Below are positions 3-28,808 of a stretch of 64,000 nucleotides of DNA, piece after piece. The stretch lies in the sequence record OQ828465.1; one strand, 5' to 3'. Below the pieces are notes generated by a model. That model had not been told where the DNA came from. It saw nothing but the letters and a program-made list of their open reading frames with translations, and ran no database searches. How positions within the stretch are numbered: the stretch's first letter is position 1; every line of letters begins with the position of its first letter. The translations under genes were made by a program, and so were the position numbers.

Positions 3-1922
3 TTTCAGAATAACTATTATCAGCAGTGGGCTCAGAAAGTTATTGACTTTCTAGAGTTTCTATTTATTCATCGTCAAATGGTGAATAACCCACAGCAGGC
101 AATGCAGCAAGCTGCATCTCTAGTATGGTCTGGTTTTGTTGGTAAATGTGCTCAAACCTTCCCGCAGCTACAAAGTCTAGTTCAACATCTAATGCCGAAT
201 ATCCAACAGGCACTTGGTGTAATCGGGCAGATTGAATCAGATATCCAAAAGATGCGTATGGGTGGTAACACCATGATGCAGGGTGGATATCAACAACCTG
301 GTGTACAGCCTGGAAGTTTCCCTGGGATGGGTGCAGCAATGGGTCGTCCTGGCATGAGTTCACAACTACCTCCAATTAACGCAGGTATCCAACAGACCTA
401 TGGTCAACCGGCTACCATGGCTAATCCGCAGCTGAACATTCCAGGGGCATATACACCAACAACTAATCATGACGCTGGTCCATCAATTGCAAATGCTGCA
501 TATGACGTACCTGGTTCTTCTCCTTTCCTGGAAAACAAACCAGTCATGCAACCTAAAGACTCTTGGGGTGCCACTGTTGAAGTATCTCCAAATAGTAGTT
601 ATGATACAATCCCTGGTGGAGGTGATGTAATGATTCTACCTGAACTACAACAAAATGCAAATACTGTAACTAATGATAATACGGATCTACCCATCCCTCA
701 AGATGTGAAAGAACTCGTATTCGATCCGAACTATTATGTACCCAATGGATTTGTAATTAATAAAGATCGTCCGATGGATGTTATCTATAATCCAGGTGGC
801 ATTGAAATCCGACCTGCTCATCTAGTTGCAGATAAACCTGATTGGGTACGTACTGCTAGTTCAGCTAATCCATACAGCATCCTAATGGATCCGGCAGTAT
901 ATTGTCGCTTCCTTGCTAAATGGCCTGATAACACTGTACATGAAGTATATCGTAAGTGGGAGAATCACATGGAAATGGATTATCTAAAGCATGAGCTTCA
1001 AGATGATCTCCGTCGTCAAGCACATCGTGGTGGTGGTGCGCGTACTGCAACCAGTTATAAGCTATCTACCATTATGGGTGATGCCAAACCGGTTAAAGAA
1101 GTAGCCGAAGAGTTTTCACCAAATGATGCTGGGTTAACTGATAATCGTGAACATGATCCAGTTATCCTAGAAGGTTATATTGCTTGTGCAAATAATCTTG
1201 AAGCAGAAGCTGGTGCACTCAATGCAGTTCGTGAAGCACTTGAGCTAAGCGAAGATGATGTAGTTCCAGCACATGAGTATCGCGCAGCATCATCCCATCC
1301 ATTTGATGCTTCAACTGAAGTCATGTATGAGATCGAGGATATTCGAAAAGAACCCGATCCGCATCTAATTGCAAAGCGCCTTAAGCAACTAATGCTAGAT
1401 GGTAAGCTGGCTCAACGCTACTATCGGTTCCTAGTTGAAAGGCTCACCAGTGCAGTTAATGAGTTCCTGGCTGATTCAATGAGTCAGAAGGTAACCATTG
1501 ATGACTTCTGTGAAGATATCGGTGACCTTATCGCATATCTGATCGGTAAGAAGGGTAAGTCAGTAGCTGATAAATTTACCGCTAGTATTCCGTTTATTGT
1601 TGGACGGAGTATGTGTGTTAATATTGATCCAGAAGAAGGTAATTCTATTCTAGATCTATCAGTGCGTTTCCAAACTGGCTGGCGCCTTGAGGAACTATCC
1701 TGCCTAAATATTTATACCGAGAAAGCAGTGCTTATCAGTAAACTTACTGAACCTAAGATTACTCAAGTAATCATGGGAATGGCAAAGCGTCTAAATAGCT
1801 CTAAAGATTCAGATGATGCACGTACCCACAAAATGTACATTATCACTGCTGATGGATCTTATCTACAAGTTATTCGTGGCGCTCTTGTTGATAATGCTGT
1901 TCTACTTAAGCTTATCAAATAA
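3..1922 (+). CDS. Hypothetical protein (position of phiKZ gp124), 5'-truncated by the window; Q/G/P/M-rich low-complexity N-terminal region
   Basis: Frame is open from nt 3 (FQNNYYQQWAQKV...) into the 614-aa ORF at 78; followed by a UUCG hairpin. Confidence 0.85.
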   Translation, partial: FQNNYYQQWAQKVIDFLEFLFIHRQMVNNPQQAMQQAASLVWSGFVGKCAQTFPQLQSLVQHLMPNIQQALGVIGQIESDIQKMRMGGNTMMQGGYQQPGVQPGSFPGMGAAMGRPGMSSQLPPINAGIQQTYGQPATMANPQLNIPGAYTPTTNHDAGPSIANAAYDVPGSSPFLENKPVMQPKDSWGATVEVSPNSSYDTIPGGGDVMILPELQQNANTVTNDNTDLPIPQDVKELVFDPNYYVPNGFVINKDRPMDVIYNPGGIEIRPAHLVADKPDWVRTASSANPYSILMDPAVYCRFLAKWPDNTVHEVYRKWENHMEMDYLKHELQDDLRRQAHRGGGARTATSYKLSTIMGDAKPVKEVAEEFSPNDAGLTDNREHDPVILEGYIACANNLEAEAGALNAVREALELSEDDVVPAHEYRAASSHPFDASTEVMYEIEDIRKEPDPHLIAKRLKQLMLDGKLAQRYYRFLVERLTSAVNEFLADSMSQKVTIDDFCEDIGDLIAYLIGKKGKSVADKFTASIPFIVGRSMCVNIDPEEGNSILDLSVRFQTGWRLEELSCLNIYTEKAVLISKLTEPKITQVIMGMAKRLNSSKDSDDARTHKMYIITADGSYLQVIRGALVDNAVLLKLIK

Positions 1923-1928
1923 GCATGA

Positions 1929-1950
1929 AAGCCCCTCTTCGGAGGGGCTT
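1929..1950 (+). terminator. Intrinsic terminator-like hairpin AAGCCCCTC-TTCG-GAGGGGCTT
   Basis: Perfect 9-bp stem with UUCG loop just after the stop at 1922; A/T-rich tail containing TATG. Confidence 0.8.
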
Positions 1951-2002
1951 ATTTATGAGTAATGTATAGTTTAATCAAATATTGTAAAAAAGGAGTAATA
2001 CA

Positions 2003-2635
2003 ATGCTAGCTAAAATGAATAAATTCTTTAAAGAATTACTAAACAAAAATACGGTGAATATGGCAGGACTATTCGATGATGTGGTATTGATGAATAGTTA
2101 TAGTAACTATAAACCAGATTTTAATGACACTGTAGAAGTAAATACAAAATGTGATCTACCGGCAAATGGTAAAGTTCTAGTTCTATATGTCGTTCAAGAT
2201 ACAATGGATATGTATATTTGGGATGGCCAACAATATCTTTCTTATAATCCATATTCCACTGAGCAATTAGCACCAATGATTGATGACCCATCAGCATTTA
2301 TTCCATCAACCAAAGCTAATACTTCTCTAAAAGTAACTTATGGTATCTGGGCGCTTAAGAAAGATCTAGAAACTATCCAGAAGTATTCAATTGGAATGCA
2401 CACTCTTCTTGATAAACATTCACTAGCACGAGTTAATGATAAGAATCCTATTAATAAGGTATTCTTCGAAACATGTCATAAAGCCCTATATACTGCACTT
2501 CGTGAATCATACAAAAACAATATGGTTAAACCACAAATCGCAGATGCAGTTACCAAGGAAGGATGTTGGTTTGGGCGAGATCATCGATCTAATAAACTGT
2601 CATTTAAATGCGGTGAATTTAAGGTTGAATGGTAA
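2003..2635 (+). CDS. Hypothetical protein (position of gp125)
   Basis: 210-aa ORF with AAGGAG RBS. Confidence 0.85.
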   Translation: MLAKMNKFFKELLNKNTVNMAGLFDDVVLMNSYSNYKPDFNDTVEVNTKCDLPANGKVLVLYVVQDTMDMYIWDGQQYLSYNPYSTEQLAPMIDDPSAFIPSTKANTSLKVTYGIWALKKDLETIQKYSIGMHTLLDKHSLARVNDKNPINKVFFETCHKALYTALRESYKNNMVKPQIADAVTKEGCWFGRDHRSNKLSFKCGEFKVEW

Positions 2636-2649
2636 TAATTAAGTAATGG

Positions 2650-2682
2650 CATAAACCCCTCTCCGCATGGAGAGGGGCTATG
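2650..2682. terminator. Bidirectional hairpin CATA..CCCCTCTCC-GCAT-GGAGAGGGG..TATG between convergent genes
   Basis: 9-bp stem between convergent stops 2635 and 2701; T-run follows on +. Confidence 0.8.
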
Positions 2683-2700
2683 TCTTTATTTTTTTTTTAT

Positions 2701-3144
2701 TTAACTACTTTCAAATTCAAGAGTTACTGGTATTGTTGGTATCCACGACAAGTTATTAAAGTATGGATGTATCGTAACCGTATTCCCAGTAATAGGTTGC
2801 GGTTGTATCTCATCTATAATAAATGGAATACCGTAAACATCTCTTAATTTTTCAGCTACTTCTAAATTATCAGTATAGTCAGTTGGTTTACCCGGTACTT
2901 TTATACCAAGACAGTACTCTGGTAAAGAGCGTCTATTAAAGTAAATAACTGTCTCACCTTTAAAATAAAGTGAACTGGTCTTCGCTCTCATTGTTGTTTT
3001 GGCATTTGTACCAGTTGCTAAGAATGTATCAGTCCCTATAAATTCAACATCATCAACAGTTAAATCCCTAGGCTTACCATTATTATCTTTAGGTTTATTA
3101 GCCACATTCCAAGCAGCTACTAATTCAGCTCTTGTATCAGCCAT
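2701..3144 (-). CDS. Putative virion structural protein (position of gp126); member of a 4-gene paralogue family
   Basis: 147-aa ORF; shares Y/F-x-R-x-x-L and L..YGI.F..DEI-type motifs with 3153-4025, 21575-22108 and the N-terminus of 38349-39299. Confidence 0.75.
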   Translation of the reverse strand: MADTRAELVAAWNVANKPKDNNGKPRDLTVDDVEFIGTDTFLATGTNAKTTMRAKTSSLYFKGETVIYFNRRSLPEYCLGIKVPGKPTDYTDNLEVAEKLRDVYGIPFIIDEIQPQPITGNTVTIHPYFNNLSWIPTIPVTLEFESS

Positions 3145-3152
3145 TACACACC

Positions 3153-4028
<876 letters not shown>

Positions 4029-4035
4029 TCGCTCC

Positions 4036-6216
<2,181 letters not shown>

Positions 6217-13040: not shown

Positions 13041-13072
13041 AAGAGACACAGCCAAAAGCTGTGTCTCTTTTT
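13041..13072 (+). terminator. Intrinsic terminator AAGAGACACAGC-CAAAA-GCTGTGTCTCTT-TTT
   Basis: 12-bp perfect stem with U-tract after gp132. Confidence 0.8.
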
Positions 13073-13098: not shown

Positions 13099-14487
13099 AT
13101 GTATAATCCTATTTTACAATTACCATTTGATCCATTAGGTACAAATCCAGATTGTTTCATTGGTAGCGAGCCTCATACTCTAGTTCAGTATCAGGGATTC
13201 GACTATAGAATCATCAAGTTATATCATGGTGGATTCTATACAAAAGGGTTAGAAGTTTATGATGGTAAATATAATCGTTTAGTTAAAGATATTGATTATA
13301 TTGTTACTTATTATCACAAAGATGCTAGTGCGTATGTCGGTCAAGAAATATGTTCAGCAATTGTTTTCTTAAAAACACCTAGTACACCAATAGTGTATAC
13401 TTCAGCTCACATGGTAGGCGGTGATCTAGCGTTTAGTTTCACAGTTATCGACGATTATATTAACTGGTGGAAAACAAATGGTAAGCCAAAGCCAAAAGAT
13501 CTCGACTACACTGGTAACGAACCATATTGGAAAGACGGTGAGTTAGTTGGCGAACGATGGCATCTTGATACGTATCAGCCTTATAATAACGAGATGGAGT
13601 GGATAACACAGGCACTCATGGCTGGTGATACAAGCGGTGAAGATGAATACCGTAGTAAAGTTAAAGAGATTTATGATGAGTTCTTAAAGAAATTTAATGA
13701 TCGCCTAGAAAAACATATTCAAGATAAAGCTAATCCACACAAGATTACCCCAACTAATGTTGAACTAGGTTTAGTTAATAACTTTCCATTGGCTACTCCA
13801 GCCATTGCTCAACTAGGTCAATCTAATGCACATTATCTAACACCGCAGTTAGCATATGGCGTATTAGATGAAATAGCTATAAAACCACTTAATGCCCACA
13901 TAGCTCGCCGTGATAATCCACATAAAGTCAAAAATACGCATGTACAGTCGTATTTGAAAAGTGATTTTGATTCACGAATTACTGGTAAATATTTAAAGAC
14001 TGATACAGTAGCTAATACTAATATGGTTTATTATAAACCTAAAGGGCAACCAACTGCTACTTTAATGGGTTATAGCGATCTTATTTGGTGGATGCGTAAG
14101 AACTTTGACACAGACGTGAACTTTACAGCTGGCGATGGCCAGAGTAATGTCATCAATATAAATCGGATTGGTTCCGGGGCAATGGGACAATGGAAAGCAC
14201 CACTCCGTGGGAATGGTATTTTTACACACTTTGATCAATTAGCCACAGAGTATTCATATCCGGTTAAGTTAAAGTTTTATGCACTAGGATTACAACCATC
14301 CGTGCAAGCAGCATTAGATTTCTGTAGAACTAACTTCACTAATCCAGATGCATGGCCTATTGGATCTACTGTATTCTTCACTATTAAAGAACAGAAAATC
14401 CAGGCAGCTGGTAACGGATTGATTTTCGTTGATTATACTCCTAACTACGTGTGTTTCCGTTCACAAGGTGGCTGGGTAATTCCATAA
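13099..14487 (+). CDS. gp131-family tail-fibre paralogue (position of gp133)
   Basis: 462 aa; shared N-terminal LPFDP.G.N domain and two NPH repeats. Confidence 0.8.
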   Translation: MYNPILQLPFDPLGTNPDCFIGSEPHTLVQYQGFDYRIIKLYHGGFYTKGLEVYDGKYNRLVKDIDYIVTYYHKDASAYVGQEICSAIVFLKTPSTPIVYTSAHMVGGDLAFSFTVIDDYINWWKTNGKPKPKDLDYTGNEPYWKDGELVGERWHLDTYQPYNNEMEWITQALMAGDTSGEDEYRSKVKEIYDEFLKKFNDRLEKHIQDKANPHKITPTNVELGLVNNFPLATPAIAQLGQSNAHYLTPQLAYGVLDEIAIKPLNAHIARRDNPHKVKNTHVQSYLKSDFDSRITGKYLKTDTVANTNMVYYKPKGQPTATLMGYSDLIWWMRKNFDTDVNFTAGDGQSNVININRIGSGAMGQWKAPLRGNGIFTHFDQLATEYSYPVKLKFYALGLQPSVQAALDFCRTNFTNPDAWPIGSTVFFTIKEQKIQAAGNGLIFVDYTPNYVCFRSQGGWVIP

Positions 14488-14498
14488 GGATAGTTTAG

Positions 14499-15872
14499 AT
14501 GAATCCATTACTTTTACCTCTTCCATTTGATGAAACTGGAGAGAGTTATAGTAACCGAACAAAGGGTGAATACCATTCACTAGCAAAACAGAAAGGATTC
14601 CCCTATCGCATCATCGTGATGGATAAGGGTTACTTTTACACTAAAGGAATGGTTATCAGAGATGGTAGGCAGAATGAGTTAAATCCAGAAATGGATTATC
14701 AGTGTACTGGTATTAATCCAGAAGTAATCGAGAAGACTGGACTTGAAGCGTGTTCAGTAATTGTTATTACAAAACAAGATGTCCACGAGGATATTTACAT
14801 TGATGCTCAGATGTGCGGTGGTATATACTGTAACCTTGCCCCTTCCATATCTGAGCATGCTAACGCTCTTTTAAATAATACCCGTAAACCACATTGGTCT
14901 AATATTTTAGATATTCCTGACCAATTTAAACCTAATGGACATATGCATGCCTATTGGGAACTTTATGGTTTTACGCCTAGAGTTGTTAAGTTAAAAGAAA
15001 TAACTGACTTATTAAAGAAAAGCTCATCAGACTCATATGACTCCATTTTAGATGAGTTTAAATATCAGTTAAGTCTAATAGAAGCTGATCTTAATACAAT
15101 TGAAGCACGACTTACTACACACATCAATGATACCACCACTAACCCACACCAGACACGTAAAGGGCAAGTGGCATTAGGTAATGTTTATAATGCTGGCATT
15201 GCAACTGAAACACAAGCCAAACAGCCAAATGGTGCTATCATGAATGTCTATGCTACGCCATGGTCAATGAAGTTATCAGTTGATACCAATTATACAGTTC
15301 AATACCTGGCACACGTTAATGATGTCACCACTAACCCACACAGGGTAACGGCTGAACAATTAAATACGTATACTGTTACTCAAGCTAATATTTTACTAAA
15401 TCAAAAATTAGATAAAGGTAAAACAGCCAATACGTCTAAACTTTTATTTGGTCAAGATGTTTATAGCATGGGTGAAACAGTACGTGCTAAAATGCCTTTA
15501 AGTGTATTGACGACTGGTCGACTAGCACCTGGTAGGATTGGTAATTCAGCTACCTGGCCAGGCCGTGATTGGACATTGATGCCTAATGGTCAATGGACTC
15601 ATTTCGGTTTTATATTTAATCGCTTCCAAAAAACAGGAACGATGGTCCACTGGAATAACACCAACTTTAAGTCTATTCAAGAAGCAATTGCTTTCCATAA
15701 CACATACTTCTCAGATCCTGAACAATGGTGGCCTGGTTCGTTAGCTATTTGCCATTACGATCAAGAATTCGTTATTGGACATGGCAATGGTACAACAGCT
15801 ACTTCCTATAGGAATACTCTATTCCTACGTAAAGTTGGATCAACGTGGACTAATATAGGGGAACCGGCATAA
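14499..15872 (+). CDS. gp131-family tail-fibre paralogue (position of gp134)
   Basis: 457 aa; LPFDETG N-terminus and two NPH repeats. Confidence 0.8.
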   Translation: MNPLLLPLPFDETGESYSNRTKGEYHSLAKQKGFPYRIIVMDKGYFYTKGMVIRDGRQNELNPEMDYQCTGINPEVIEKTGLEACSVIVITKQDVHEDIYIDAQMCGGIYCNLAPSISEHANALLNNTRKPHWSNILDIPDQFKPNGHMHAYWELYGFTPRVVKLKEITDLLKKSSSDSYDSILDEFKYQLSLIEADLNTIEARLTTHINDTTTNPHQTRKGQVALGNVYNAGIATETQAKQPNGAIMNVYATPWSMKLSVDTNYTVQYLAHVNDVTTNPHRVTAEQLNTYTVTQANILLNQKLDKGKTANTSKLLFGQDVYSMGETVRAKMPLSVLTTGRLAPGRIGNSATWPGRDWTLMPNGQWTHFGFIFNRFQKTGTMVHWNNTNFKSIQEAIAFHNTYFSDPEQWWPGSLAICHYDQEFVIGHGNGTTATSYRNTLFLRKVGSTWTNIGEPA

Positions 15873-17263
15873 TGATTACTTTTTTACCATTAGATCTAAA
15901 AGCTAAATTAGCATCTAATTACATTGTAGATGAGGATCACACACTTATTCAAGTCAATAATAAAACACATCGCGTACTTATGTGTACACATGGTGGTTTT
16001 TATACTAAGGACTTTAATCTACGTGATAAGAAGACTGGTTTATCTTTAAACAAAGATCAATATAAAACAACCTATCTTTATTCACAGTTATCTGAAATGA
16101 CTGGCTTAGAAGTAATGGGTATTGTTGTAGTAACTGATCCTAATGTTAGTCCTAATGTCCAAGTTACATATAGAGCAGTTGGTGGTTTCTTTAGTATTTC
16201 AGCATTAGAACTTAAAGCTGTTTTTGATAAACTTGAATTAGATGAATTAAGTTTCACTTGGGATGATATTATTGGTAAACCCGATGCATATCCGCCTGCA
16301 CCTCACGGCCATGAATATTGGCAGATTTATGGCACAGATACAATGGTAACTGAATTAAACCGAATAGCACACGCTTATCGGGTCGGTAGAAGTGCCATGG
16401 ATAATGCTGCCGATGATTATTATAAAGTTTATCTCACTGATGCAAAAACCGCTGTGGACGATTATAGAGATCGAGTTACAGCACACTTAACTGATTATAA
16501 TAATCCGCATGCTGATGATCGATTCAAGTTAATTCCACCGCTTGATAAGATATCCAACTGGGGTTTTGCTACTGAAGCTGAGTCAGTTAATAGAAACGTA
16601 AATAATAAATACATGCCAATTGGTGGTATTTATCGTATTCTTAATATTGATACGTTGGCTAAACTTGCAGCACATATTAAAAACTTTAATAACCCACATG
16701 CTGTCACAGCTGACCAAGTTGGATCATATACCAAACCAGTGATGGATTCTAAAATAACTCCATTATTAGGTATTAATGAACAAGCTGCTAATGCGACCAC
16801 TATTGGTGCTACTACTAATAGTCAGGGTTATCCAGTTACTGGAACAGGTAAGGTATATCAGAATTTCTGGAATGATGTTCGAAAAGATATTCCAGCTGAA
16901 GAAGTAACTAGTGGCGTATTTAAATGGAATGCATTAGGTAAAGGTAATGCATCAATATTAAATGACCCTGAGAGATATTATCTAGCGAGCGATGGTACTT
17001 GGCAAGACTGGGTTGAAGCTTTTAAAGAGTGGAACAAAGATAAGATTAAAGCCATTACCTTAGGTCAGGTAAATAGTGAAGCAGAAGCATTAAACACGTT
17101 AAATACGATGTTTACAGATAATACCAAATATCCTGAAGGCACTTACGCTGTTGTAGGTGTTAGAACTAATACCCCCTTTGAAGCCTATTATTACCAGCAA
17201 TATGTAGCAGTTAGAAATAATGGTACATGGCGTTGGATGATTCGAGCTGGAGCACTTGTATAA
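15872..17263 (+). CDS. gp131-family tail-fibre paralogue (position of gp135)
   Basis: 463 aa; TAATG coupling to the previous gene; two NPH repeats. Confidence 0.8.
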   Translation: MITFLPLDLKAKLASNYIVDEDHTLIQVNNKTHRVLMCTHGGFYTKDFNLRDKKTGLSLNKDQYKTTYLYSQLSEMTGLEVMGIVVVTDPNVSPNVQVTYRAVGGFFSISALELKAVFDKLELDELSFTWDDIIGKPDAYPPAPHGHEYWQIYGTDTMVTELNRIAHAYRVGRSAMDNAADDYYKVYLTDAKTAVDDYRDRVTAHLTDYNNPHADDRFKLIPPLDKISNWGFATEAESVNRNVNNKYMPIGGIYRILNIDTLAKLAAHIKNFNNPHAVTADQVGSYTKPVMDSKITPLLGINEQAANATTIGATTNSQGYPVTGTGKVYQNFWNDVRKDIPAEEVTSGVFKWNALGKGNASILNDPERYYLASDGTWQDWVEAFKEWNKDKIKAITLGQVNSEAEALNTLNTMFTDNTKYPEGTYAVVGVRTNTPFEAYYYQQYVAVRNNGTWRWMIRAGALV

Positions 17264-17865
17264 TGAATAATCCGTTATCACTCCAAGAACTATCTTTAGC
17301 TACTGCACCTACTGAAGATAAAGTAAAAGTACTATTAATGTTTAACCGTACTTCTGAGGTATTCCTACAAAGCGTGGGCTATCTACCTTTAGATGCATTT
17401 GATGCTAAGTCACGTGAGCACACCATTTTTGTTGAAGCCGAAATGGGTACTTATGATGTAGTCGTAAGTAATACACCTGGTAAACAACCTACACTTTCCG
17501 ATTGGAAGATTGTTCCTAAAGAAGAAGCGCCACAAGTGATTACTGAAGATCACTTAAATAGTAAAGTGGCCTACAAAATTACTGAACGCTATCCAGTGAC
17601 TGAGCAAATTAATATCCTTGCACGTGCAATTAAACAGCTAGCTGAAAAATATGGTCAAGAGTTAGATGAACTAGAAGAAATGCTTGATTATATTGATCTT
17701 GTTAAACGAACTAATCGCGCGCATAAGGAGGCCCTAATTGAGAGCCCAGACGTTATCTATAAATCCAGGGAAGATCTCGACGCTGAGAAAGCACATCGAT
17801 ATGCAGGCGGCCTGCATGAGCTTATCGGCCCACGAAAGATCGACCAAGGACGTGTTTTCAGCTGA
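17263..17865 (+). CDS. Putative tail-fibre assembly/chaperone-like protein (position of gp136)
   Basis: Start most likely at TAATG 17263 (GGAG at 17249); KITERYPVTEQINIL motif resembles fibre-adjacent chaperone-type proteins. Confidence 0.55.
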   Translation: MNNPLSLQELSLATAPTEDKVKVLLMFNRTSEVFLQSVGYLPLDAFDAKSREHTIFVEAEMGTYDVVVSNTPGKQPTLSDWKIVPKEEAPQVITEDHLNSKVAYKITERYPVTEQINILARAIKQLAEKYGQELDELEEMLDYIDLVKRTNRAHKEALIESPDVIYKSREDLDAEKAHRYAGGLHELIGPRKIDQGRVFS

Positions 17866-18298
17866 ATTTGCAGCTGACCTTGTATCTTATCTGGATACAC
17901 TGGGAGATTCCTGGTGGTTTAATCGGAAAAAAATTAATAGTATCCCAACCAAAGGTATCACTGAATGTGATTATTGGTTTTTAGGGCATAACCAAATGCC
18001 AATGGAATTACGGGAATTACTATTTCATATTGCACCTAAGGTAGAAGGTGCTTGGTTAGGCGAAGTTCTAATCAACCGATATGAAATTGGTACAGGTATG
18101 CCTGAACACATCGACCAAGCTGTTTATCGTTACAACATGGTTATTGCATTAAATGACAATGGCGATGGTATAACGATCAATGGTGAGTTTTATCAGGATG
18201 TACCAGGTAGGGCTACTATTTTTCCAATCCGTTCAGAGCCACATGAAGTCCCTCCAGTTAAAAATAAAAGATACGTCCTTATATATCTCTACGAGTAG
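17801..18298 (+). CDS. 2OG-Fe(II) dioxygenase-fold protein (position of gp137); start uncertain (17738 or 17801)
   Basis: INRY..G..M.EHID (HxD), later PHEV (distal His) and KRY (2OG-binding Arg) in canonical order. Confidence 0.75.
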   Translation: MQAACMSLSAHERSTKDVFSAEFAADLVSYLDTLGDSWWFNRKKINSIPTKGITECDYWFLGHNQMPMELRELLFHIAPKVEGAWLGEVLINRYEIGTGMPEHIDQAVYRYNMVIALNDNGDGITINGEFYQDVPGRATIFPIRSEPHEVPPVKNKRYVLIYLYE

Positions 18299-18306
18299 GG
18301 TACAAC

Positions 18307-18795
18307 ATGGCAATTAAACTTAAGACTTTATCTAAGACAGAACTAAAAACATTAACAAAGCTTAAAGGTGAAGTTTCATTTAGAGACTCATATGGCCACC
18401 GTATGCGAGTTGGCACTAATGGCCTTAAAGCATGTAGTGTTTATAATAATTCAAAATGGTTTAATTGGACTGCTAAACAGCGTAAAGAAATTAAACCAAT
18501 TTTAGGCGAAGAACTATTTAACAAAGCACTGCAAGTATGGTTTTTAGATTTCCCCAAAATAGATGGATTTCTAGATGAGATGAATTATTGGGTAGATAAA
18601 CCCGAGTCCGGTACTATTCTTGCTTGGAATATTGGACCTGATGCTAAGTTCATTTTAGATGGTGAGGAACTATTAATTGGAAAAGGTGAAGGATTAGTAT
18701 TCCATCTATCCCAATTACATGAAGTAAAACGTTCCCATAATGGACAATCATGGATCTGTGTAATGGTACGTGGTGCTCCTGAAAAATTTGCTTAA
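18307..18795 (+). CDS. Degenerate 2OG-Fe(II)/cupin-fold paralogue (position of gp138)
   Basis: GEGLVFHLSQLHEV...WICVMVR strand pattern retains the distal His; HxD is not retained. Confidence 0.55.
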   Translation: MAIKLKTLSKTELKTLTKLKGEVSFRDSYGHRMRVGTNGLKACSVYNNSKWFNWTAKQRKEIKPILGEELFNKALQVWFLDFPKIDGFLDEMNYWVDKPESGTILAWNIGPDAKFILDGEELLIGKGEGLVFHLSQLHEVKRSHNGQSWICVMVRGAPEKFA

Positions 18796-18824
18796 CAGCA
18801 TAAATCCCCTCCATGTGGAGGGGA
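18794..18824 (+). terminator. Hairpin AACAGCATAAA-TCCCCTCC-ATGT-GGAGGGGA
   Basis: 8-bp stem right after the stop at 18795; same AACAGCATAA leader as at 34084 and 43711. Confidence 0.65.
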
Positions 18825-18860
18825 ACTCTTACAAATTTACTCAATAGTACAGTGTACTAA

Positions 18861-19787
<927 letters not shown>

Positions 19788-19789
19788 AT

Positions 19790-20353
19790 ATGCTTAAGCT
19801 TCCAGCGAGTGATGAGCCATTTCGGGTACTAGCATTAGACCCTGGTTCACAAAACCTCGGCATAGCTATTCTGGAAGATAAGTTGGATGGAAGTAATAAG
19901 GTGGTACGTAATGCATTTACCTGCCACCTTAAAGATACAAATCCGGCATATGCTGCCATCTCCGAGGTTCATGGTAGTAGATTTACTAGAATGCAGCAAA
20001 TGAGTGATGTGGTACTAAATATACTACATACTGAAAAACCACATGCAGTTATTGTAGAGTCTAACTATCTTGGTAAGTTTGCCCAAAGCTTCGCTGTACT
20101 TGTAGAATGTGTGACCTATGTACATAGAGCATTATACGAGTATGATAGATTTATACCTTTATACATGATTGATCCTACTACAGTTAAAATCAATGCGGGT
20201 ATGAAAAAAGTAAAGGGTACTACTAAAGATGATGTTAAAGAAGCAATGCGTTCTCGTACTGACATCACATGGAACATCGATATAGATAGTCTAGATGACC
20301 ACTCTATGGATGCTTGTGCGATAGCTTACTACTACCTTACTAGGATTGTTTAA
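19790..20353 (+). CDS. ruvC: RuvC-like Holliday junction resolvase (position of gp140)
   Basis: VLALDPG, VIVES and DDHSMDACAIA acidic tetrad pattern of RuvC. Confidence 0.8.
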   Translation: MLKLPASDEPFRVLALDPGSQNLGIAILEDKLDGSNKVVRNAFTCHLKDTNPAYAAISEVHGSRFTRMQQMSDVVLNILHTEKPHAVIVESNYLGKFAQSFAVLVECVTYVHRALYEYDRFIPLYMIDPTTVKINAGMKKVKGTTKDDVKEAMRSRTDITWNIDIDSLDDHSMDACAIAYYYLTRIV

Positions 20354-23157: not shown

Positions 23158-25527
23158 ATGGCAAATGCTACAGACAAAGGCAAGATCAGTCAACTGCCGG
23201 ATCTAGCTACTCTTAACGATAGCGAGTATATTGAATTAATTCATACCGATGCAGCTGGTCAAGTCGATAACTATAAGTTTCTGCTGTCAAAACTACAGAC
23301 TGGAGCACCCGGTCTTAGTGCGTACGAGATTGCCGTTAAAAATGGTTTCCAGGGAACTGAAACCGAATGGCTTGATTCGCTTAAAGGTAAATCTTCTTAT
23401 CAAATCGCAGTCGATCTAGGTTTCGTTGGTACTGAAGAAGAGTTTATAGCATCCCTTAAAGGTGATGCTGGTAAGAGTGCATATGAAGTAGCTGTGGAAA
23501 ACGGTTTCCAAGGTACTGAACAGGAATGGTTAACATCACTGCATGCAACCATGACTGCTGAACTACTCCAGTCGCTCTTAAATCAACAAGGTTACACAGT
23601 TAAAGATGTACTGCGTGTAACTGGCAAGAATGGTGGATTATCATCCAACGCTGCTTTCCATAACTTTGCTTTCCTGTTTGATAAGCGCCTAAATCAAGAT
23701 GACTTAACCGCTGGTGATAAAGTACCACAGCGTATGATGGAACAAGGCCGTATGGAAGCAGAAGGTTATTCTTATCTAAAGAACGCCTCTGCACCCACTA
23801 CGCAAGGTGCATTACCCGAATTACCTGAGTCTGAAATTCGTATTTACGACAATGGTGAATTCCAGATTGGTAGTTTAACTGATTACATTGCATTCAAGAA
23901 TGACGGCAATATCCGTATTGTTGAAGGCGCTGATGAATCAACTGTTGATCTTAAGAACCTTCCTAAAAATGAAGGTATTAGTGGCGGTGTATTCGTCAAA
24001 GATGTACAAGCAACTGACCCCAGTCAGAACGTAGGTAGTATTGTGCGTACCCCCGATGGGCACAGCGTACAGTCATGCCTATCAACTACTAGTAATGTTC
24101 GAGTTATCGTTGATGCAATAACTGGACATTCTAGTTATGTACCTAGTGTTAAAATCAATAACATAGATGCAGTTGTAACTCCTGGCGTTAATCCACCTAT
24201 GTGGATTGCTACTGCCGATATTGATCTTGGTGCACCCACTACTGAAGGTTATGCTGATATTGTTGTAGAACACGCCGATGGGGCTAAATTCACTACTAAG
24301 GTATTAGCCGATACTCCCGCTAATATTACTAGTGCTGTATTTACTGGCGGTTATCCGTTAGGTCAAACAGAACTTAAAGAAGATGACCTTGTTGCAATTA
24401 AAGTAGTTACTGATGAAAATATAGTAGCATACGAAATTGCTGACTTTGGTGCACTGAAAGAAAGTAGTGGTACTGTTGCACCTACTAAAGAACTAGAGGT
24501 TACTGGTCTTTACGTAGCTGACCGTGGTAATACTACTAAGGCATATGGTTTCCGTGTACGTGTTCAGAAATCCACTGGTTCATGGTCAGAATGGTTTACT
24601 TCCAGTGATGCTGGTTCCGAAGATAAAATTAACACCATGCAGTTAAACGATCTTCGCCCAGTTGTTAATATTGGTCAAGTAACTTATCCGTCTGGTCAAA
24701 GTGCTATTAAAGTAGGTGAAACTGCCACTGTAGCCAATACAGTATCTAATGCTGATAGTGTGGTTTATTCCTCACCAAATGATCAGCTCACTATAACCAG
24801 TGCAAATGAAGCAGAAATTGCTAAGGTAGTTACTTATAAGTCTGGTACTTATAACGACAGCACTAATAACCTATTAATTACTGCTAAACGTGCAGCTAAT
24901 GGTAGTGTAGCTACGGCTACTGCTGTTGTAGCTATTGCAAATGCGGTACCTACTGCGACGGTTACCTACCCTGCTGCTCGCCTTCGTTCAGGTGGTAACT
25001 TTGGAACCCAAGTACAAAGTCATGTCATTACTTTAACCTCTACTCAGAAACTAAGTGCAGCTCCGGCCATGAATGCGCCTGGCGGTAAGTGGGCTACTGA
25101 GGATTGGAAATCTGACGCCACTGGTAAGGTATGGACACGTGCGTTACTAGTACATGACGATGATCCTAAAGGAACCTACGATTTTAACAGTGTGGTTCTA
25201 AAAGGTTTAGCTGGTGTTGAAGCTAATAGTGTAAATGGTGGTACTTACGTACTAGGTGGATTTGTATTCCGCACTCTAAGTGTGGCTGCTTGGCCGAACC
25301 GTGAAACTGATATTGGTACTGAAGTAACCAATACTGGTAAACTACGTTGCAGTAACCTATCTAAAGGTTCTACTGGTAGCTTAAACTTCACTTATAAGGC
25401 AGATGATGCGAATCAAGTTGACACCTACACCATCAAGGATGGCAATAAGTGGTATAACTGTGACTCAGCAAACGCTGTATCCAATACCACTGGACTGATG
25501 AAAATCGAACTTGAGGAAGTAGTATAA
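23158..25527 (+). CDS. gp145: Tail-fibre-associated structural protein (position of gp145)
   Basis: 789 aa; three SAYE/Q-I/V-AV..GF.GTE.EW..SL repeats; T/A/V/S-rich beta-sandwich-like C-terminal half. Confidence 0.75.
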   Translation: MANATDKGKISQLPDLATLNDSEYIELIHTDAAGQVDNYKFLLSKLQTGAPGLSAYEIAVKNGFQGTETEWLDSLKGKSSYQIAVDLGFVGTEEEFIASLKGDAGKSAYEVAVENGFQGTEQEWLTSLHATMTAELLQSLLNQQGYTVKDVLRVTGKNGGLSSNAAFHNFAFLFDKRLNQDDLTAGDKVPQRMMEQGRMEAEGYSYLKNASAPTTQGALPELPESEIRIYDNGEFQIGSLTDYIAFKNDGNIRIVEGADESTVDLKNLPKNEGISGGVFVKDVQATDPSQNVGSIVRTPDGHSVQSCLSTTSNVRVIVDAITGHSSYVPSVKINNIDAVVTPGVNPPMWIATADIDLGAPTTEGYADIVVEHADGAKFTTKVLADTPANITSAVFTGGYPLGQTELKEDDLVAIKVVTDENIVAYEIADFGALKESSGTVAPTKELEVTGLYVADRGNTTKAYGFRVRVQKSTGSWSEWFTSSDAGSEDKINTMQLNDLRPVVNIGQVTYPSGQSAIKVGETATVANTVSNADSVVYSSPNDQLTITSANEAEIAKVVTYKSGTYNDSTNNLLITAKRAANGSVATATAVVAIANAVPTATVTYPAARLRSGGNFGTQVQSHVITLTSTQKLSAAPAMNAPGGKWATEDWKSDATGKVWTRALLVHDDDPKGTYDFNSVVLKGLAGVEANSVNGGTYVLGGFVFRTLSVAAWPNRETDIGTEVTNTGKLRCSNLSKGSTGSLNFTYKADDANQVDTYTIKDGNKWYNCDSANAVSNTTGLMKIELEEVV
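23311..23545 (+). repeat. Three tandem ~25-aa SAYEIAV..GF.GTE.EW..SL repeats
   Basis: Visible in the translation; a fourth copy lies in gp146 at 26691-26768. Confidence 0.85.
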
Positions 25528-28500
25528 TGGCTTCTGCATTTGAAGATTATGTAAACGGGGAACTCCCCAAACGGGTATCATCAATTGATGAACCCACTTC
25601 TGTAGTTAATGGACACATCCCGGTTTCTACCGGGGTGGGTCTTAATACCACTTTCGTTGATCCTGTTACTATACCTGGATTAAAGGGTGAAGATGGTCAG
25701 CCGGGTAAAGATGGCGATCAAGGTCCCCCTGGCCCAGTTGGTCCGGCTATTAACATTATCGCTAATGTTGATCTAGCAACATTCGAACAAGATATTAAAC
25801 CATTAGATACGCATAATGTCGGTGATGCTTGGTTCGTTGAAGATCGGCTATGGGTATGGGAATCACCGCTAGGTAATGAAGATCCCCCTGTAAAAGGTCG
25901 TTGGGTTGAAACAGGTTCACTTCGTGGTCCAGATGGTACTGGTCTGGTTATCCGTGGTCGTTGGCCTAATAACTTAGAATTACCTAAGACTGAAAGTAAT
26001 AAACCTGGAGATGCTTACTCATGGAATAATCAACTCTGGGCGTGGATGCTTATCTCAGGTAATAATCCGCCAGAGAATCCAACTATTGATGACTATGATT
26101 GGTTCCCAGTTACACCACAGGGTGAACGTGGACCTGAGGGCCCTGAGGGTCCGCAAGGTAAAGATGGTGAAATTGGTCCTGAAGGTCCTCAGGGTGAACC
26201 AGCAATGCCGTTTACCATTAAGGATTCACTACCATCACCAGCTGATTTACCTGATCCATCTGTAGCTAAAGAATCAGAAGCATACTTAGTTACTATGGAA
26301 GCTGGTAAACCAGAACATCTATTCATCTTTGTAAAAGGGGCATGGTCAGACCTAGGTACTTTCCAAGGCCCTGAGGGCCCACAAGGTAAACCAGGTAATA
26401 CAGGTGATCCGGGTCCCGATGGTAAACAAGGTGAACCTGGTCCACAAGGTCGTAACTTAGAAGTAGTTAAAGCAGTTGAAACTGCTGATGATCTATTAAC
26501 CACCACTGGTGTAGAACAATACCAAGGTGTTTCAGTACGTTCCACCAATACGGTTTATGTACTGACTGGCCAAGATCCGACTGTTGATATCTCATGGACA
26601 GCCATGGGTTCATTCCGTGGCCCGCAGGGCCCTGAAGGTCCGCAAGGTGAAGATGGCGATCAAGGTCTACCTGGTGAACCAGGGGCACAAGGTAAATCGG
26701 CTTTCCAAGTAGCATTGGACAATGGCTTCACTGGTACTGAGGGTGAATGGTTAATCAGTCTACATGGTAAGAACGTAGTTATTACTGGTGCTGTTGCCAA
26801 TGAGGCAGCCCTGCCGGCAGATGCTCCTGATCAGGCAGCGTACTTCACACAAGACACATCTACCTTATTTGTTAAGATAGATGGTAATTGGGTAAATAGT
26901 GGTACACATCGAGGTCCTAAAGGTGAAGATGGCGCACCTGGTAAAGACGGTGATCAGGGACCAGAAGGACCCGAGGGACCAGAAGGCCCACAAGGTCCCG
27001 CTGGTGAACCTATCCAGATCATCGCAGCGATTGACACTCCTGAAGATACCCCACCAGAAGCACTTGCCGATAACCAATGGAAAGCATATACTGTTAAGTC
27101 CACGGGCGAAGTATTTGTTAACATGGACGGTAGTCGCTGGACTAGCATTGGTATTATGGCAGGTCCGCAAGGTAAACCGGGTGAAGGTTTAAACATTAAA
27201 GGTGTTTTAACCGATGCTTCACAACTACCAAAGAAAGACACTGATCCTGACTTAGTAACTGGTGATTCATACTGGGTTGAAACTAACGAAGGTACAATGC
27301 TCTATACTTACCAAGGTCAGGAAATTGATGGCTATATCGGCCCAATTAATCTAAATGGTGAGCAGGGTATCCAGGGTGTCGAAGGCCCACAAGGTCCTGA
27401 AGGTAAACAAGGTGGTGGTCTATTAATTATCTATGTTGGTGATGATGCTGGTAAACCAGTAGCATCTGCTGATAACGTAGGTAAAGGTATTGCCATTCGC
27501 ACCAATACTGAAGGACAAGTAGAAGTATTTGTAAGTATCGATACTGAAGGTACATTTACTTGGGAAAGCCTAGGTGTCTTAGCCATGGGTCCGCAGGGTC
27601 CTGAAGGTCCTGAGGGCAAACAAGGTGTTCCAGGTATCCCTGGTAAAACCGGTCAGAAAGGTGAACGTGGATCCTCTTGGGTAATTCTACCTGAAGGTCA
27701 AACTGCACCCACTTCTATCGATGGTAATCGTGGTGACTGGTGTATCGACAAAACTGGTACCGTTTGGTATAAAGATGCTAACTGGGTTGTATTCTACAAA
27801 TTAATGTCAGTTCCAGTTAGTGAAGTCGATCCAGAAGATGTCGATAAGAAAATGGTTCGGTACAAACTCGGTTGGACTGAACTACCTGTTGATGAGGTGG
27901 TAGATGCTGAAGTAGGTGTCTTCTATGGTCGCCGTAAAGCAACCGCTGACGGGGCTGTTGAATGGACTGCTATTGAATTACCAACACCTGCCATTGATGC
28001 TGTACCTAGTCCAGTTGTTAATGCACAATACGTTCGTAAAGGTATTGCAGGGGGTGAAACTGAATGGGCTACCATTACATTCCCAGAAATTCCTTCAGAT
28101 GTAGTACGCGATACTGCACAAGCTACTAAGCCTCAAGGTCGTGTAGCTGGTAACTGGGTTGATGTAGCACCTCTGCAAACCGATGATACTCTAATGGGTA
28201 TGCAAAATGGTGAATGGGTAGCTGTACCAGCCGCAGTTATTGGTGAAGTACCTAGTGAAGGTGCTAATGGCACTAACTATGTACGTGAGAAAACAGCTAG
28301 TGGTTCTAAATGGACACCTGTAACTATTATAGTTGATCAAGCTGATGCTACTAGTGGACAACTATTCCTACGTAATGCTGCGGCTAAATCATGGACTCTA
28401 TTCCAAGGGCCGAATAATGATGTAACCGCTGATGGTGATTGGCTACGTAGCCGTACTGGTACTAATATTACTTGGAAGAAGCTAGATAAATCATTCGATG

Positions 28501-28808
28501 CATATAGCCTAAAATCAAGTACATTCACTGGTACAGCTTTAACTCTAACACCAGCTAACCAACAGTGCTATAGGGTTCAAACTGCTGCTAACCAAACCAT
28601 TACACTAGAGAATGGACCTGTTGATCGTATGATCACAGCTGTTCTTGTATTGCTTGGTAAGGTAGCTATGCCAACACTTTCTAGTGCAGTGTTACAATGG
28701 AACAATGGTACTCCAGTAATAGTAGATGACCTAGGTGATACTAAAACAGTTCTTACCCTCTTATGGGATGGTACTAACTGGATAGTTTCCAAAGGTGCTG
28801 TTATTTAA
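25527..28808 (+). CDS. gp146: Collagen-like long tail-fibre protein
   Basis: 1093 aa; several G-X-Y blocks (GPEGPQG) alternating with ~45-aa modules; C-terminal YVR..W repeats; TAATG coupling to gp145. Confidence 0.85.
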   Translation: MASAFEDYVNGELPKRVSSIDEPTSVVNGHIPVSTGVGLNTTFVDPVTIPGLKGEDGQPGKDGDQGPPGPVGPAINIIANVDLATFEQDIKPLDTHNVGDAWFVEDRLWVWESPLGNEDPPVKGRWVETGSLRGPDGTGLVIRGRWPNNLELPKTESNKPGDAYSWNNQLWAWMLISGNNPPENPTIDDYDWFPVTPQGERGPEGPEGPQGKDGEIGPEGPQGEPAMPFTIKDSLPSPADLPDPSVAKESEAYLVTMEAGKPEHLFIFVKGAWSDLGTFQGPEGPQGKPGNTGDPGPDGKQGEPGPQGRNLEVVKAVETADDLLTTTGVEQYQGVSVRSTNTVYVLTGQDPTVDISWTAMGSFRGPQGPEGPQGEDGDQGLPGEPGAQGKSAFQVALDNGFTGTEGEWLISLHGKNVVITGAVANEAALPADAPDQAAYFTQDTSTLFVKIDGNWVNSGTHRGPKGEDGAPGKDGDQGPEGPEGPEGPQGPAGEPIQIIAAIDTPEDTPPEALADNQWKAYTVKSTGEVFVNMDGSRWTSIGIMAGPQGKPGEGLNIKGVLTDASQLPKKDTDPDLVTGDSYWVETNEGTMLYTYQGQEIDGYIGPINLNGEQGIQGVEGPQGPEGKQGGGLLIIYVGDDAGKPVASADNVGKGIAIRTNTEGQVEVFVSIDTEGTFTWESLGVLAMGPQGPEGPEGKQGVPGIPGKTGQKGERGSSWVILPEGQTAPTSIDGNRGDWCIDKTGTVWYKDANWVVFYKLMSVPVSEVDPEDVDKKMVRYKLGWTELPVDEVVDAEVGVFYGRRKATADGAVEWTAIELPTPAIDAVPSPVVNAQYVRKGIAGGETEWATITFPEIPSDVVRDTAQATKPQGRVAGNWVDVAPLQTDDTLMGMQNGEWVAVPAAVIGEVPSEGANGTNYVREKTASGSKWTPVTIIVDQADATSGQLFLRNAAAKSWTLFQGPNNDVTADGDWLRSRTGTNITWKKLDKSFDAYSLKSSTFTGTALTLTPANQQCYRVQTAANQTITLENGPVDRMITAVLVLLGKVAMPTLSSAVLQWNNGTPVIVDDLGDTKTVLTLLWDGTNWIVSKGAVI

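Follow-up and report, generated by a model that had tools for sequence, protein, structure and literature searches.

The 64,000-nucleotide stretch of record OQ828465.1 analyzed here (hereafter, the window) belongs to a jumbo phage of the phiKZ species and carries, directly 3′ of the paralogous tail-fibre genes PHIKZ133-135, three small genes that correspond to PHIKZ136, PHIKZ137, and PHIKZ138 in the phiKZ, KTN4, and SL2 records. Among jumbo phages, phiKZ serves as the principal model, and it is a candidate for use in therapy. Across bases 17000-19000, the window is 100% identical to Pseudomonas phages PaSz-1_45_270k, PaZh_1, and PA_ZH1 and 99.3% identical to KTN4, SL2, and PA7, and its gp136 and gp137 proteins are identical in phiKZ itself. 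We observe that gp136-gp137-gp138 constitute an ordered, translationally coupled cassette (hereafter, the trio) that follows a fibre gene both here and in several unrelated phage lineages. Although 2-oxoglutarate (2OG) oxygenases, giant-virus protein hydroxylases, and fibre chaperone cassettes are each already known, this arrangement is new here: in the searched literature, we found no description of a trio of oxygenase, pseudo-oxygenase, and third protein tied to the distal module of a fibre, no paper on gp137 or on a phage fibre-linked oxygenase, and no biochemical data on gp137.

The trio lies at the end of a longer run of genes on the + strand. The upstream edge of this run is an intrinsic-terminator-like hairpin between gp132 and gp133 (13041-13069, + strand), in which a 12-bp stem is followed by a T-rich tail. 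Next come three genes for tail-fibre subunits, whose complex is described in PMC13250141: PHIKZ133 (13099-14487), which has a baseplate-anchoring N-terminal part and, in its last ~110 aa, the distal module described below (E 2e-35 to a C-terminal hidden Markov model, HMM); PHIKZ134 (14499-15872), a paralogue of gp133 and gp135 (BLASTP E of 4e-27 and 2e-31, respectively); and PHIKZ135 (15872-17263), the last fibre gene before the trio, which matches phrog_2163 (6e-141) as well as the C-terminal module (HMM E 9e-32). The fibre region as a whole (13099-17263 in the window; 1549-4209 in related locus L003) matches short stretches of several tail-fibre PHROGs. PHIKZ136 (17263-17865, 200 aa) opens the trio, its ATG (17263-17265) having one base in common with the gp135 stop codon (17261-17263). 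The first 50 nt of PHIKZ137 (17816-18298) coincide with the 3′ end of gp136, and the annotated start of PHIKZ137 varies by record, with ATG 17816 giving 160 aa in RefSeq phiKZ and GTG 17852 giving 148 aa in KTN4 and SL2. PHIKZ138 (18307-18795, 162 aa) is followed by a G+C-rich hairpin at 18805-18824, to which no strand is assigned (8-bp stem, −18.2 kcal/mol, z −3.8) and which has no T-run on the + strand. Because of the terminator-like site before gp133 and the short or negative intergenic distances that follow, gp133 to gp138 look like one unit. The coupling of gp136 to the fibre gene and the hairpin at the end of the unit had both been noted in a preliminary description made from the letters of the sequence, and both are borne out by these coordinates.

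To place the trio in a wider context, we compared 20 related loci by using family HMMs. In 18 of these, as well as in the window, gp136-gp137-gp138 follow the last tail-fibre gene directly and in this order; L009 is included among the 18 although its contig stops after the oxygenase. The exceptions are L010, which has a lone oxygenase, and L015, which has a tandem of oxygenase and pseudo-oxygenase genes. Homologues of gp136 lie upstream of the oxygenase in 17 of the 20 loci, and the reading frames of the trio overlap or abut, with overlaps of 4-50 nt. The lineages involved include the Pseudomonas chimalliviruses PhiPA3, 201phi2-1, Noxifer, and PA1C; the T4-like Otagovirus, in which the trio is flanked by the short fibre that follows gp11 on one side and by gp13 on the other; the 115-kb phage QdP_Psa3; and metagenomic myovirus contigs with other baseplate types. 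Wherever the flank is covered by sequence, the gene upstream of the trio is a tail fibre by Pfam or PHROG, and at least four N-terminal types of fibre occur in this position (the phiKZ gp133 type, PF12571 or tail-collar fibre N-terminal, phrog_910/972, and the Phage_fiber_2 repeat). The proposal that both oxygenase-fold genes belong to the fibre unit rather than to DNA metabolism is thus upheld by the recurrence of the trio after fibre genes in unrelated lineages. The tandem in L015 (positions 1-2072) consists of an oxygenase-like gene that is cut by the contig, a pseudo-oxygenase-like gene (220 aa), an oxygenase-like gene (167 aa), and a further gene of 221 aa, with no gp136-like gene within that stretch. 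The pseudo-oxygenase-like proteins of L015 and L016 carry an insertion of ~35 residues.

The central gene of the trio encodes what is predicted to be an intact oxygenase. The motifs INRY, EHID, PHEV, and KRY are all present in gp137 as previously read, and six positions (N87, Y89, H98, D100, H143, and R152, in the numbering of the 160-aa form) are invariant in 14 close relatives with 53-64% identity. Among 65 family members reaching down to ~20% identity, R152 remains invariant, and each of the other five positions is kept in at least 90%. The match to Pfam PF13640 (E 1.8e-5, 26.1 bits) falls just below the gathering cut-off of 27. The family appears to be small and compact by these sequence searches: a gp137-family profile run against 1.84 billion cluster representatives retrieves just 72 clusters at E ≤ 1e-3, full-length members have ~150-190 aa, with the relatives of gp137 mostly at 150-160 aa, and shorter entries are fragment-like. 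The AlphaFold2 (AF2) model of gp137 (predicted local distance difference test, pLDDT, 95.6; predicted template-modeling score, pTM, 0.90) is a double-stranded β-helix with eight core strands. When compared to the PDB with Foldseek, this model gives 293 matches at E ≤ 1e-3, and all of the best 50 are Fe(II)/2OG oxygenases. The top folds among these best 50 of 293 are the Pseudomonas putida prolyl hydroxylase PPHD with EF-Tu, a Shewanella oxygenase, the chlorella-virus enzyme PBCV-1 vCPH, and prolyl hydroxylase domain (PHD)-type enzymes, together with mimivirus and human lysyl hydroxylases. By fold, gp137 is therefore nearest to protein prolyl and lysyl hydroxylases, with AlkB-type enzymes close behind, within about one order of magnitude in E. 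On sequence and predicted structure, gp137 certainly belongs to the 2OG-Fe(II) oxygenase superfamily, while its subfamily assignment is not certain; given its fold and conserved active-site residues, catalytic competence is the likeliest prediction.

A comparison with characterized protein hydroxylases brings out both likenesses and differences. Like vCPH (5c5t), Pseudomonas PPHD/EF-Tu (4iw3), PHD2, and the mimivirus lysyl hydroxylase (6ax7), gp137 has a predicted double-stranded β-helix with a His-x-Asp...His arrangement followed by a basic residue (Foldseek E ~1e-6, TM 0.55-0.72), and like the giant-virus enzymes, it is encoded by a virus and beside structural genes. In contrast to these prolyl and lysyl hydroxylases, to which it is only 12-19% identical, gp137 is shorter (148-160 aa versus 180-230), has an Arg and an Asn-x-Tyr motif in strand I that are nearer to the AlkB clade, occurs alongside an inactive paralogue and a further protein, and does not have collagen-like repeats as a conserved neighbor. 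Within viral models in BFVD, the closest neighbors of gp137 after its orthologues are cyanophage 2OG oxygenases (S-CAM8, S-T4, and S-RIM50), which are also small and are 11-19% identical to gp137.

The AlkB-like features raise the alternative that gp137 is a nucleic-acid dioxygenase, acting in repair or demethylation of phage or host DNA or RNA, whose place among tail genes is fortuitous; of the readings considered, this one comes nearest to the database name "DNA endonuclease". A sequence-profile search of the PDB with gp137 ranks the uncharacterized Burkholderia oxygenase 6n1f first (1.8e-6), followed by ALKBH8, ALKBH6, vCPH (E 1.7e-3 over 45 residues), and ALKBH2; the family profile matches ALKBH8, ALKBH6, ALKBH2, and AlkB over the strand I-II motif with E of 3.5e-5 to 0.1, and the Arg after the distal His is a further likeness to the AlkB/ALKBH group (PF13532). 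At E ≤ 0.01, 22 of the 65 family members match PF13532 and 26 match PF13640, and the top folds of gp138 include ALKBH7, NMAD-1, and ALKBH5. AlkB enzymes carry an N-terminal nucleotide-recognition lid. The gp137 matches to AlkB-type enzymes, however, span only ~50 residues (those to ALKBH2 and AlkB are confined to positions 50-100), gp137 itself matches PF13532 with an E of just 0.13, and we observe no full-length match that includes the lid, for which a protein of 148-160 aa, ~50 residues shorter than the ~200-residue chains of AlkB and ALKBH2, has little room. Moreover, protein hydroxylases score slightly better by fold, gp137 has no nuclease motif or fold, and the position after a fibre gene, a context of fibre assembly rather than repair, is conserved in unrelated phages with otherwise different genomes. 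We therefore regard a role on nucleic acids as the least probable of the alternatives, with a very slight chance of being correct. The annotation of gp137 as a "DNA endonuclease" (phrog_2297, RefSeq) is likewise unsupported, because searches of Pfam, NCBIfam, and the PDB, by sequence and by fold, recover no nuclease family. This name is attached to gp137 orthologues in many of the phage records listed, while the record of phage Churi gives 2OG-Fe(II) oxygenase.

The third gene of the trio encodes a pseudo-oxygenase. Neither Pfam nor NCBIfam has a match to gp138, and a word-based protein search returns its own cluster alone, such that its relatives were collected by tblastn and profile searches. 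In its AF2 model (pLDDT 79), the strands follow one another as in gp137, and a loop at residues 31-42 is poorly predicted; the Foldseek matches of this model in the PDB include ALKBH7, PPHD, and PHD2 at E of 1e-6 to 1e-5, ALKBH7 being the best and NMAD-1 and ALKBH5 also being among the matches. The kinship of the two proteins is also visible in the BFVD model of PhiPA3 gp157, the gp138 orthologue, which superimposes on the gp137 model with TM of 0.73/0.72 and an rmsd of 3.2 over 161 columns, among the best TM and the lowest rmsd of the non-orthologous viral matches. By hhalign, the two families align over 34 columns around the distal His (E 4e-4, probability 34%). This His, H138 of gp138, is invariant in 14 of 14 sequences from all lineages, whereas in the same 14 sequences, the His-x-Asp site lacks a conserved His, and the distal His is not followed by an Arg. 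Because gp138 has the fold of gp137 and keeps only the distal His, we assign it, on alignment and model, as a degenerate paralogue of gp137, in agreement with the earlier description of a second β-helix protein that retains LHEV and has lost HxD. The best-conserved positions of gp138, Arg34, Gly36, and Ser44 (each in at least 13 of 14 sequences), fall in a loop at residues 31-46 with pLDDT below 50, which may be an interaction or pseudo-substrate loop.

A pairing of active and degenerate oxygenase modules is known from the ribosomal prolyl hydroxylases Tpa1/Ofd1/OGFOD1, of whose two oxygenase domains one is active and the other degenerate. The likeness to gp137 and gp138 is conceptual only, as it lies in the combination of an active module with a paralogous one that has no metal ligands; gp137 and gp138 are separate adjacent genes, and no Tpa1/Ofd1/OGFOD1 structure is among the 50 best PDB fold matches of either protein. 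The first gene of the trio, gp136, is a member of the conserved family phrog_13209, and no relative of known function is detectable in Pfam, in PHROG, or with a family profile against the PDB. Its earlier description as chaperone-like is not an observation. A likeness of residues 87-172 to SUMO (Smt3 tags in the PDB, single-sequence E of 1e-3 to 0.07) is lost with a 12-sequence family profile, and we treat it as chance for this reason.

We next examined the fibres that precede the trio. BLASTP finds no match between fibres of different lineages, and their C-terminal region is covered by no Pfam or PHROG family. A profile built from the last 110 residues of twelve chimallivirus fibres nevertheless aligns by hhalign with the QdP_Psa3 fibre (probability 93%, E 3.7e-7, 80 columns) and with the Otagovirus short fibre (E 4.6e-4, 32 columns). 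When the corresponding HMM is run against 813 open reading frames (ORFs) from the loci and the window, matches outside the training set are confined to genes directly upstream of the trio, with those in Otagovirus and L016 being weak (E 1e-3 to 7e-3). Because the HMM does not detect this region in five metagenomic loci (L017, L018, L019, L020, and L022), a shared fibre C-terminal module next to the trio can be considered partly established by these profile comparisons.

The distribution of the trio among hosts mirrors that of the distal fibre. By tblastn against 50,697 phage records, gp136 is found in 71, gp137 in 72, and gp138 in 72, all of them Pseudomonas phages, a host restriction shown for isolates. 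By comparison, gp134 matches 166 records: chimalliviruses of Erwinia, Serratia, Ralstonia, Klebsiella, E. coli, Aeromonas, and other hosts share just the first ~300 of its 457 residues and have neither the fibre C-terminal module nor the trio, while the remainder of gp134 is found in Pseudomonas phages alone. From the split in gp134 and the distribution of the trio, the baseplate-proximal part of the fibre thus appears to be lineage-bound, and the distal part, together with the trio, appears to be host-bound and mobile. Such a pattern is that expected of a receptor-side module with accessory genes.

On present records, the trio is made in the infected cell and is not part of the virion. In the 201phi2-1 record, gp216-220 are listed as virion proteins on the basis of mass spectrometry (MS), and gp221-223, the trio, carry no such mark. 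Evidence tags in RefSeq phiKZ give electrospray ionization tandem MS (ESI-MS/MS) for gp134 and gp135 and RNA-seq only for gp136-139. The 2026 cryo-EM atlas of phiKZ, in which 40 constituent virion proteins are reported, assigns gp131, gp133, gp134, and gp135 to a hetero-hexameric fibre complex and nowhere mentions gp136 or gp137 (PMC13250141). In infected cells pooled at 10-30 min, gp136, gp137, and gp138 are all detected by MS. In a Grad-seq glycerol gradient, gp136 and gp138 peak in fractions 2-4, while 83% of gp137 is in the pellet (supplementary table 1 of PMC10914614). In the same dataset, gp135 peaks in fraction 12 and is listed among proteins that cosediment with 30S (PMC10914614). These data bear on the possibility that gp136 and/or gp138 are minor virion components that stay on the fibre tip as adhesin-like accessory subunits. 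The KTN4 record labels the orthologues of both as "putative virion-associated protein", and 46% of the gp138 signal is in the Grad-seq pellet, which would be in line with such a role. Against it, MS did not identify the trio in 201phi2-1 virions, gp136 and gp138 have no MS-detected tag in the phiKZ record, and gp136 and gp137 go unmentioned in the paper on the 40 constituent virion proteins (PMC13250141). On balance, we find it quite improbable that these proteins are retained on the particle.

A second possibility is that all three proteins are purely structural chaperones for folding or oligomerization of the tip, with the oxygenase fold serving as a scaffold without chemistry. Genes for fibre-tip chaperones are usually located after those for fibres and move together with them; T4 gp38/gp57A and the Tfa type of Mu and P2 are fibre assembly or chaperone genes that show this arrangement with fibre-tip modules. 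The trio resembles these systems in its position after the fibre, its coupling, its exchange with the distal module, and its absence from most virion inventories, but we found no sequence or fold likeness, and those chaperones are not oxygenases. That gp138 is already catalytically dead and that the trio is not recorded in virions would both fit a chaperone function. The six metal- and 2OG-binding positions of gp137, however, are retained in family members whose identity has fallen to 20-30%, and conservation of these catalytic positions in gp137, while its paralogue gp138 lost them, would not be expected of a mere scaffold. We therefore consider a role without chemistry rather improbable.

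If gp137 is an active enzyme, the question becomes what it acts on. The preliminary description had pointed to two kinds of fibre sequence in the window. The first is gp146 (25527-28808), whose collagen-like character is readily seen in seven G-X-Y runs of 7-11 triplets with ~20% proline. Within the stretches covered, the gp146 relatives in 201phi2-1 and Noxifer (L012 12807-14330; L013 13812-14390) have G-X-Y runs that are almost free of proline and are instead rich in Thr/Asn/Asp or Asp/Lys. In the whole QdP_Psa3 genome, there is a single G-X-Y run of 12 triplets, which is proline-poor and on the strand opposite to an annotated gene, and no proline-rich collagen run on the annotated strand. 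This run is at L025 19468-19575, opposite CDS0110, with the coding strand taken from the annotation. Since 201phi2-1, Noxifer, and QdP_Psa3 keep the trio where collagen runs are proline-poor or absent, the collagen prolines of gp146 are not a conserved substrate, although gp146 may be an extra substrate specific to phiKZ. The second candidate was the Asn/His-type motifs of gp131-135. Asn-Pro-His occurs twice each in gp131, gp133, gp134, and gp135, in a similar local setting, and once in gp132. In other lineages, the fibres adjoining the trio have no such motif, and the suggestion that it is the target is likewise not borne out. Taken together, these findings favor the C-terminal module of the fibre encoded just upstream, rather than gp146, as the putative substrate.

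As the trio follows a fibre gene in several unrelated lineages, it probably matures or modifies the fibre tip. In the model that we favor, gp136-138, co-transcribed and translationally coupled with gp133-135, would form a mobile cassette of three genes that is accessory to the distal, receptor-side module of the tail fibre. In this model, gp137 would hydroxylate, or otherwise oxidize, a residue in the C-terminal domain of the newly made fibre, with the inactive gp138 and the unrelated gp136 acting as substrate-holding or assembly partners, and the resulting modification of the tip would be needed for folding, oligomerization, or receptor binding. We assign a probability of roughly 0.45 to the proposal that the trio acts on the distal domain of the adjacent fibre with hydroxylation as the likeliest chemistry, where we infer the fibre substrate, the reaction, and the cooperation of the three proteins alike.

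Several observations weigh against this proposal. AlkB-type nucleic-acid enzymes are near-equal in fold to gp137 and share its strand I-II motif. There is no strictly conserved candidate target residue, with one Gly alone being invariant in the 12 chimallivirus fibre C-termini, and no modified residue has been reported. The match of the C-terminal module to Otagovirus is weak (probability 33%), and to this can be added the five metagenomic loci in which the module is not detected. A stable three-protein complex is not evident, because gp137 pellets while gp136 and gp138 peak in light fractions, and the KTN4 record would place the orthologues of gp136 and gp138 with the virion. A distant family member (E 1e-6 to the profile) occurs at L010 1481-1978 as a lone gene beside DUF1120 and PEGA-domain genes in bacterial-looking surroundings. 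Finally, the distal fibre density is not modeled in the phiKZ atlas, in which the fibre tip is the sole part of the tail that is not resolved (PMC13250141).

The strongest rival to modification of the fibre is a role on the receptor side, which would explain co-transfer with the tip equally well. In this scenario, the target of the oxygenase pair would be a component of the host envelope or a small molecule that fits the receptor specificity of the tip. Such a modification could, for instance, mask the receptor and so guard against superinfection or the loss of progeny to debris, and the cassette would travel with the tip without acting on it. Receptor-blocking genes adjoin receptor-binding genes in other phages, such as llp in T5. 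Such a role accounts for co-transfer with the distal module and restriction to Pseudomonas phages, and it fits the non-virion status of the trio; there is also a weak Pfam signal for the Asp/Arg-hydroxylase family, which includes lipid A hydroxylase (E 0.077 for gp137, with 3 of 65 members below 0.01). On the other hand, we saw no signal peptide or membrane segment in the trio by eye, with no predictor having been run, gp136 and gp138 sediment as soluble proteins of the light fractions, and the host restriction is shown for isolates only. Coupling to fibre genes in every lineage, moreover, fits a stoichiometric role in assembly better. A receptor-side function is thus unlikely in our assessment, though it is the alternative to be taken most seriously.

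Returning to modification of the fibre tip, its broader form, in which the fibre tips of many Pseudomonas phages would need an O2-, iron-, and 2OG-dependent modification by an active/pseudo-oxygenase pair and an adaptor that are exchanged together with the tip, is a tentative and more doubtful proposition than the action of the trio on its adjacent fibre. If true, fibre maturation can require chemistry besides chaperones, and the movement of distal fibre modules between phages as blocks of at least four genes would be explained. With the trio, a phage receptor-binding protein would for the first time have a post-translational "writer" dedicated to it, and the quality of progeny virions would depend on the oxygen and metabolic state of the infected cell. 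The trio also provides an annotation marker for the receptor-side end of fibre modules, and the present analysis both corrects the "DNA endonuclease" label and offers the many orphan phage 2OG oxygenases a testable context.

Downstream of the unit, we observe a gene for a RuvC-like Holliday-junction resolvase at 19790-20353 (phrog_159 1e-38; Pfam RuvC below threshold), which sits in the tail/lysis block between the virion protein gp139 (DUF7208) and the spanin-like gp141.

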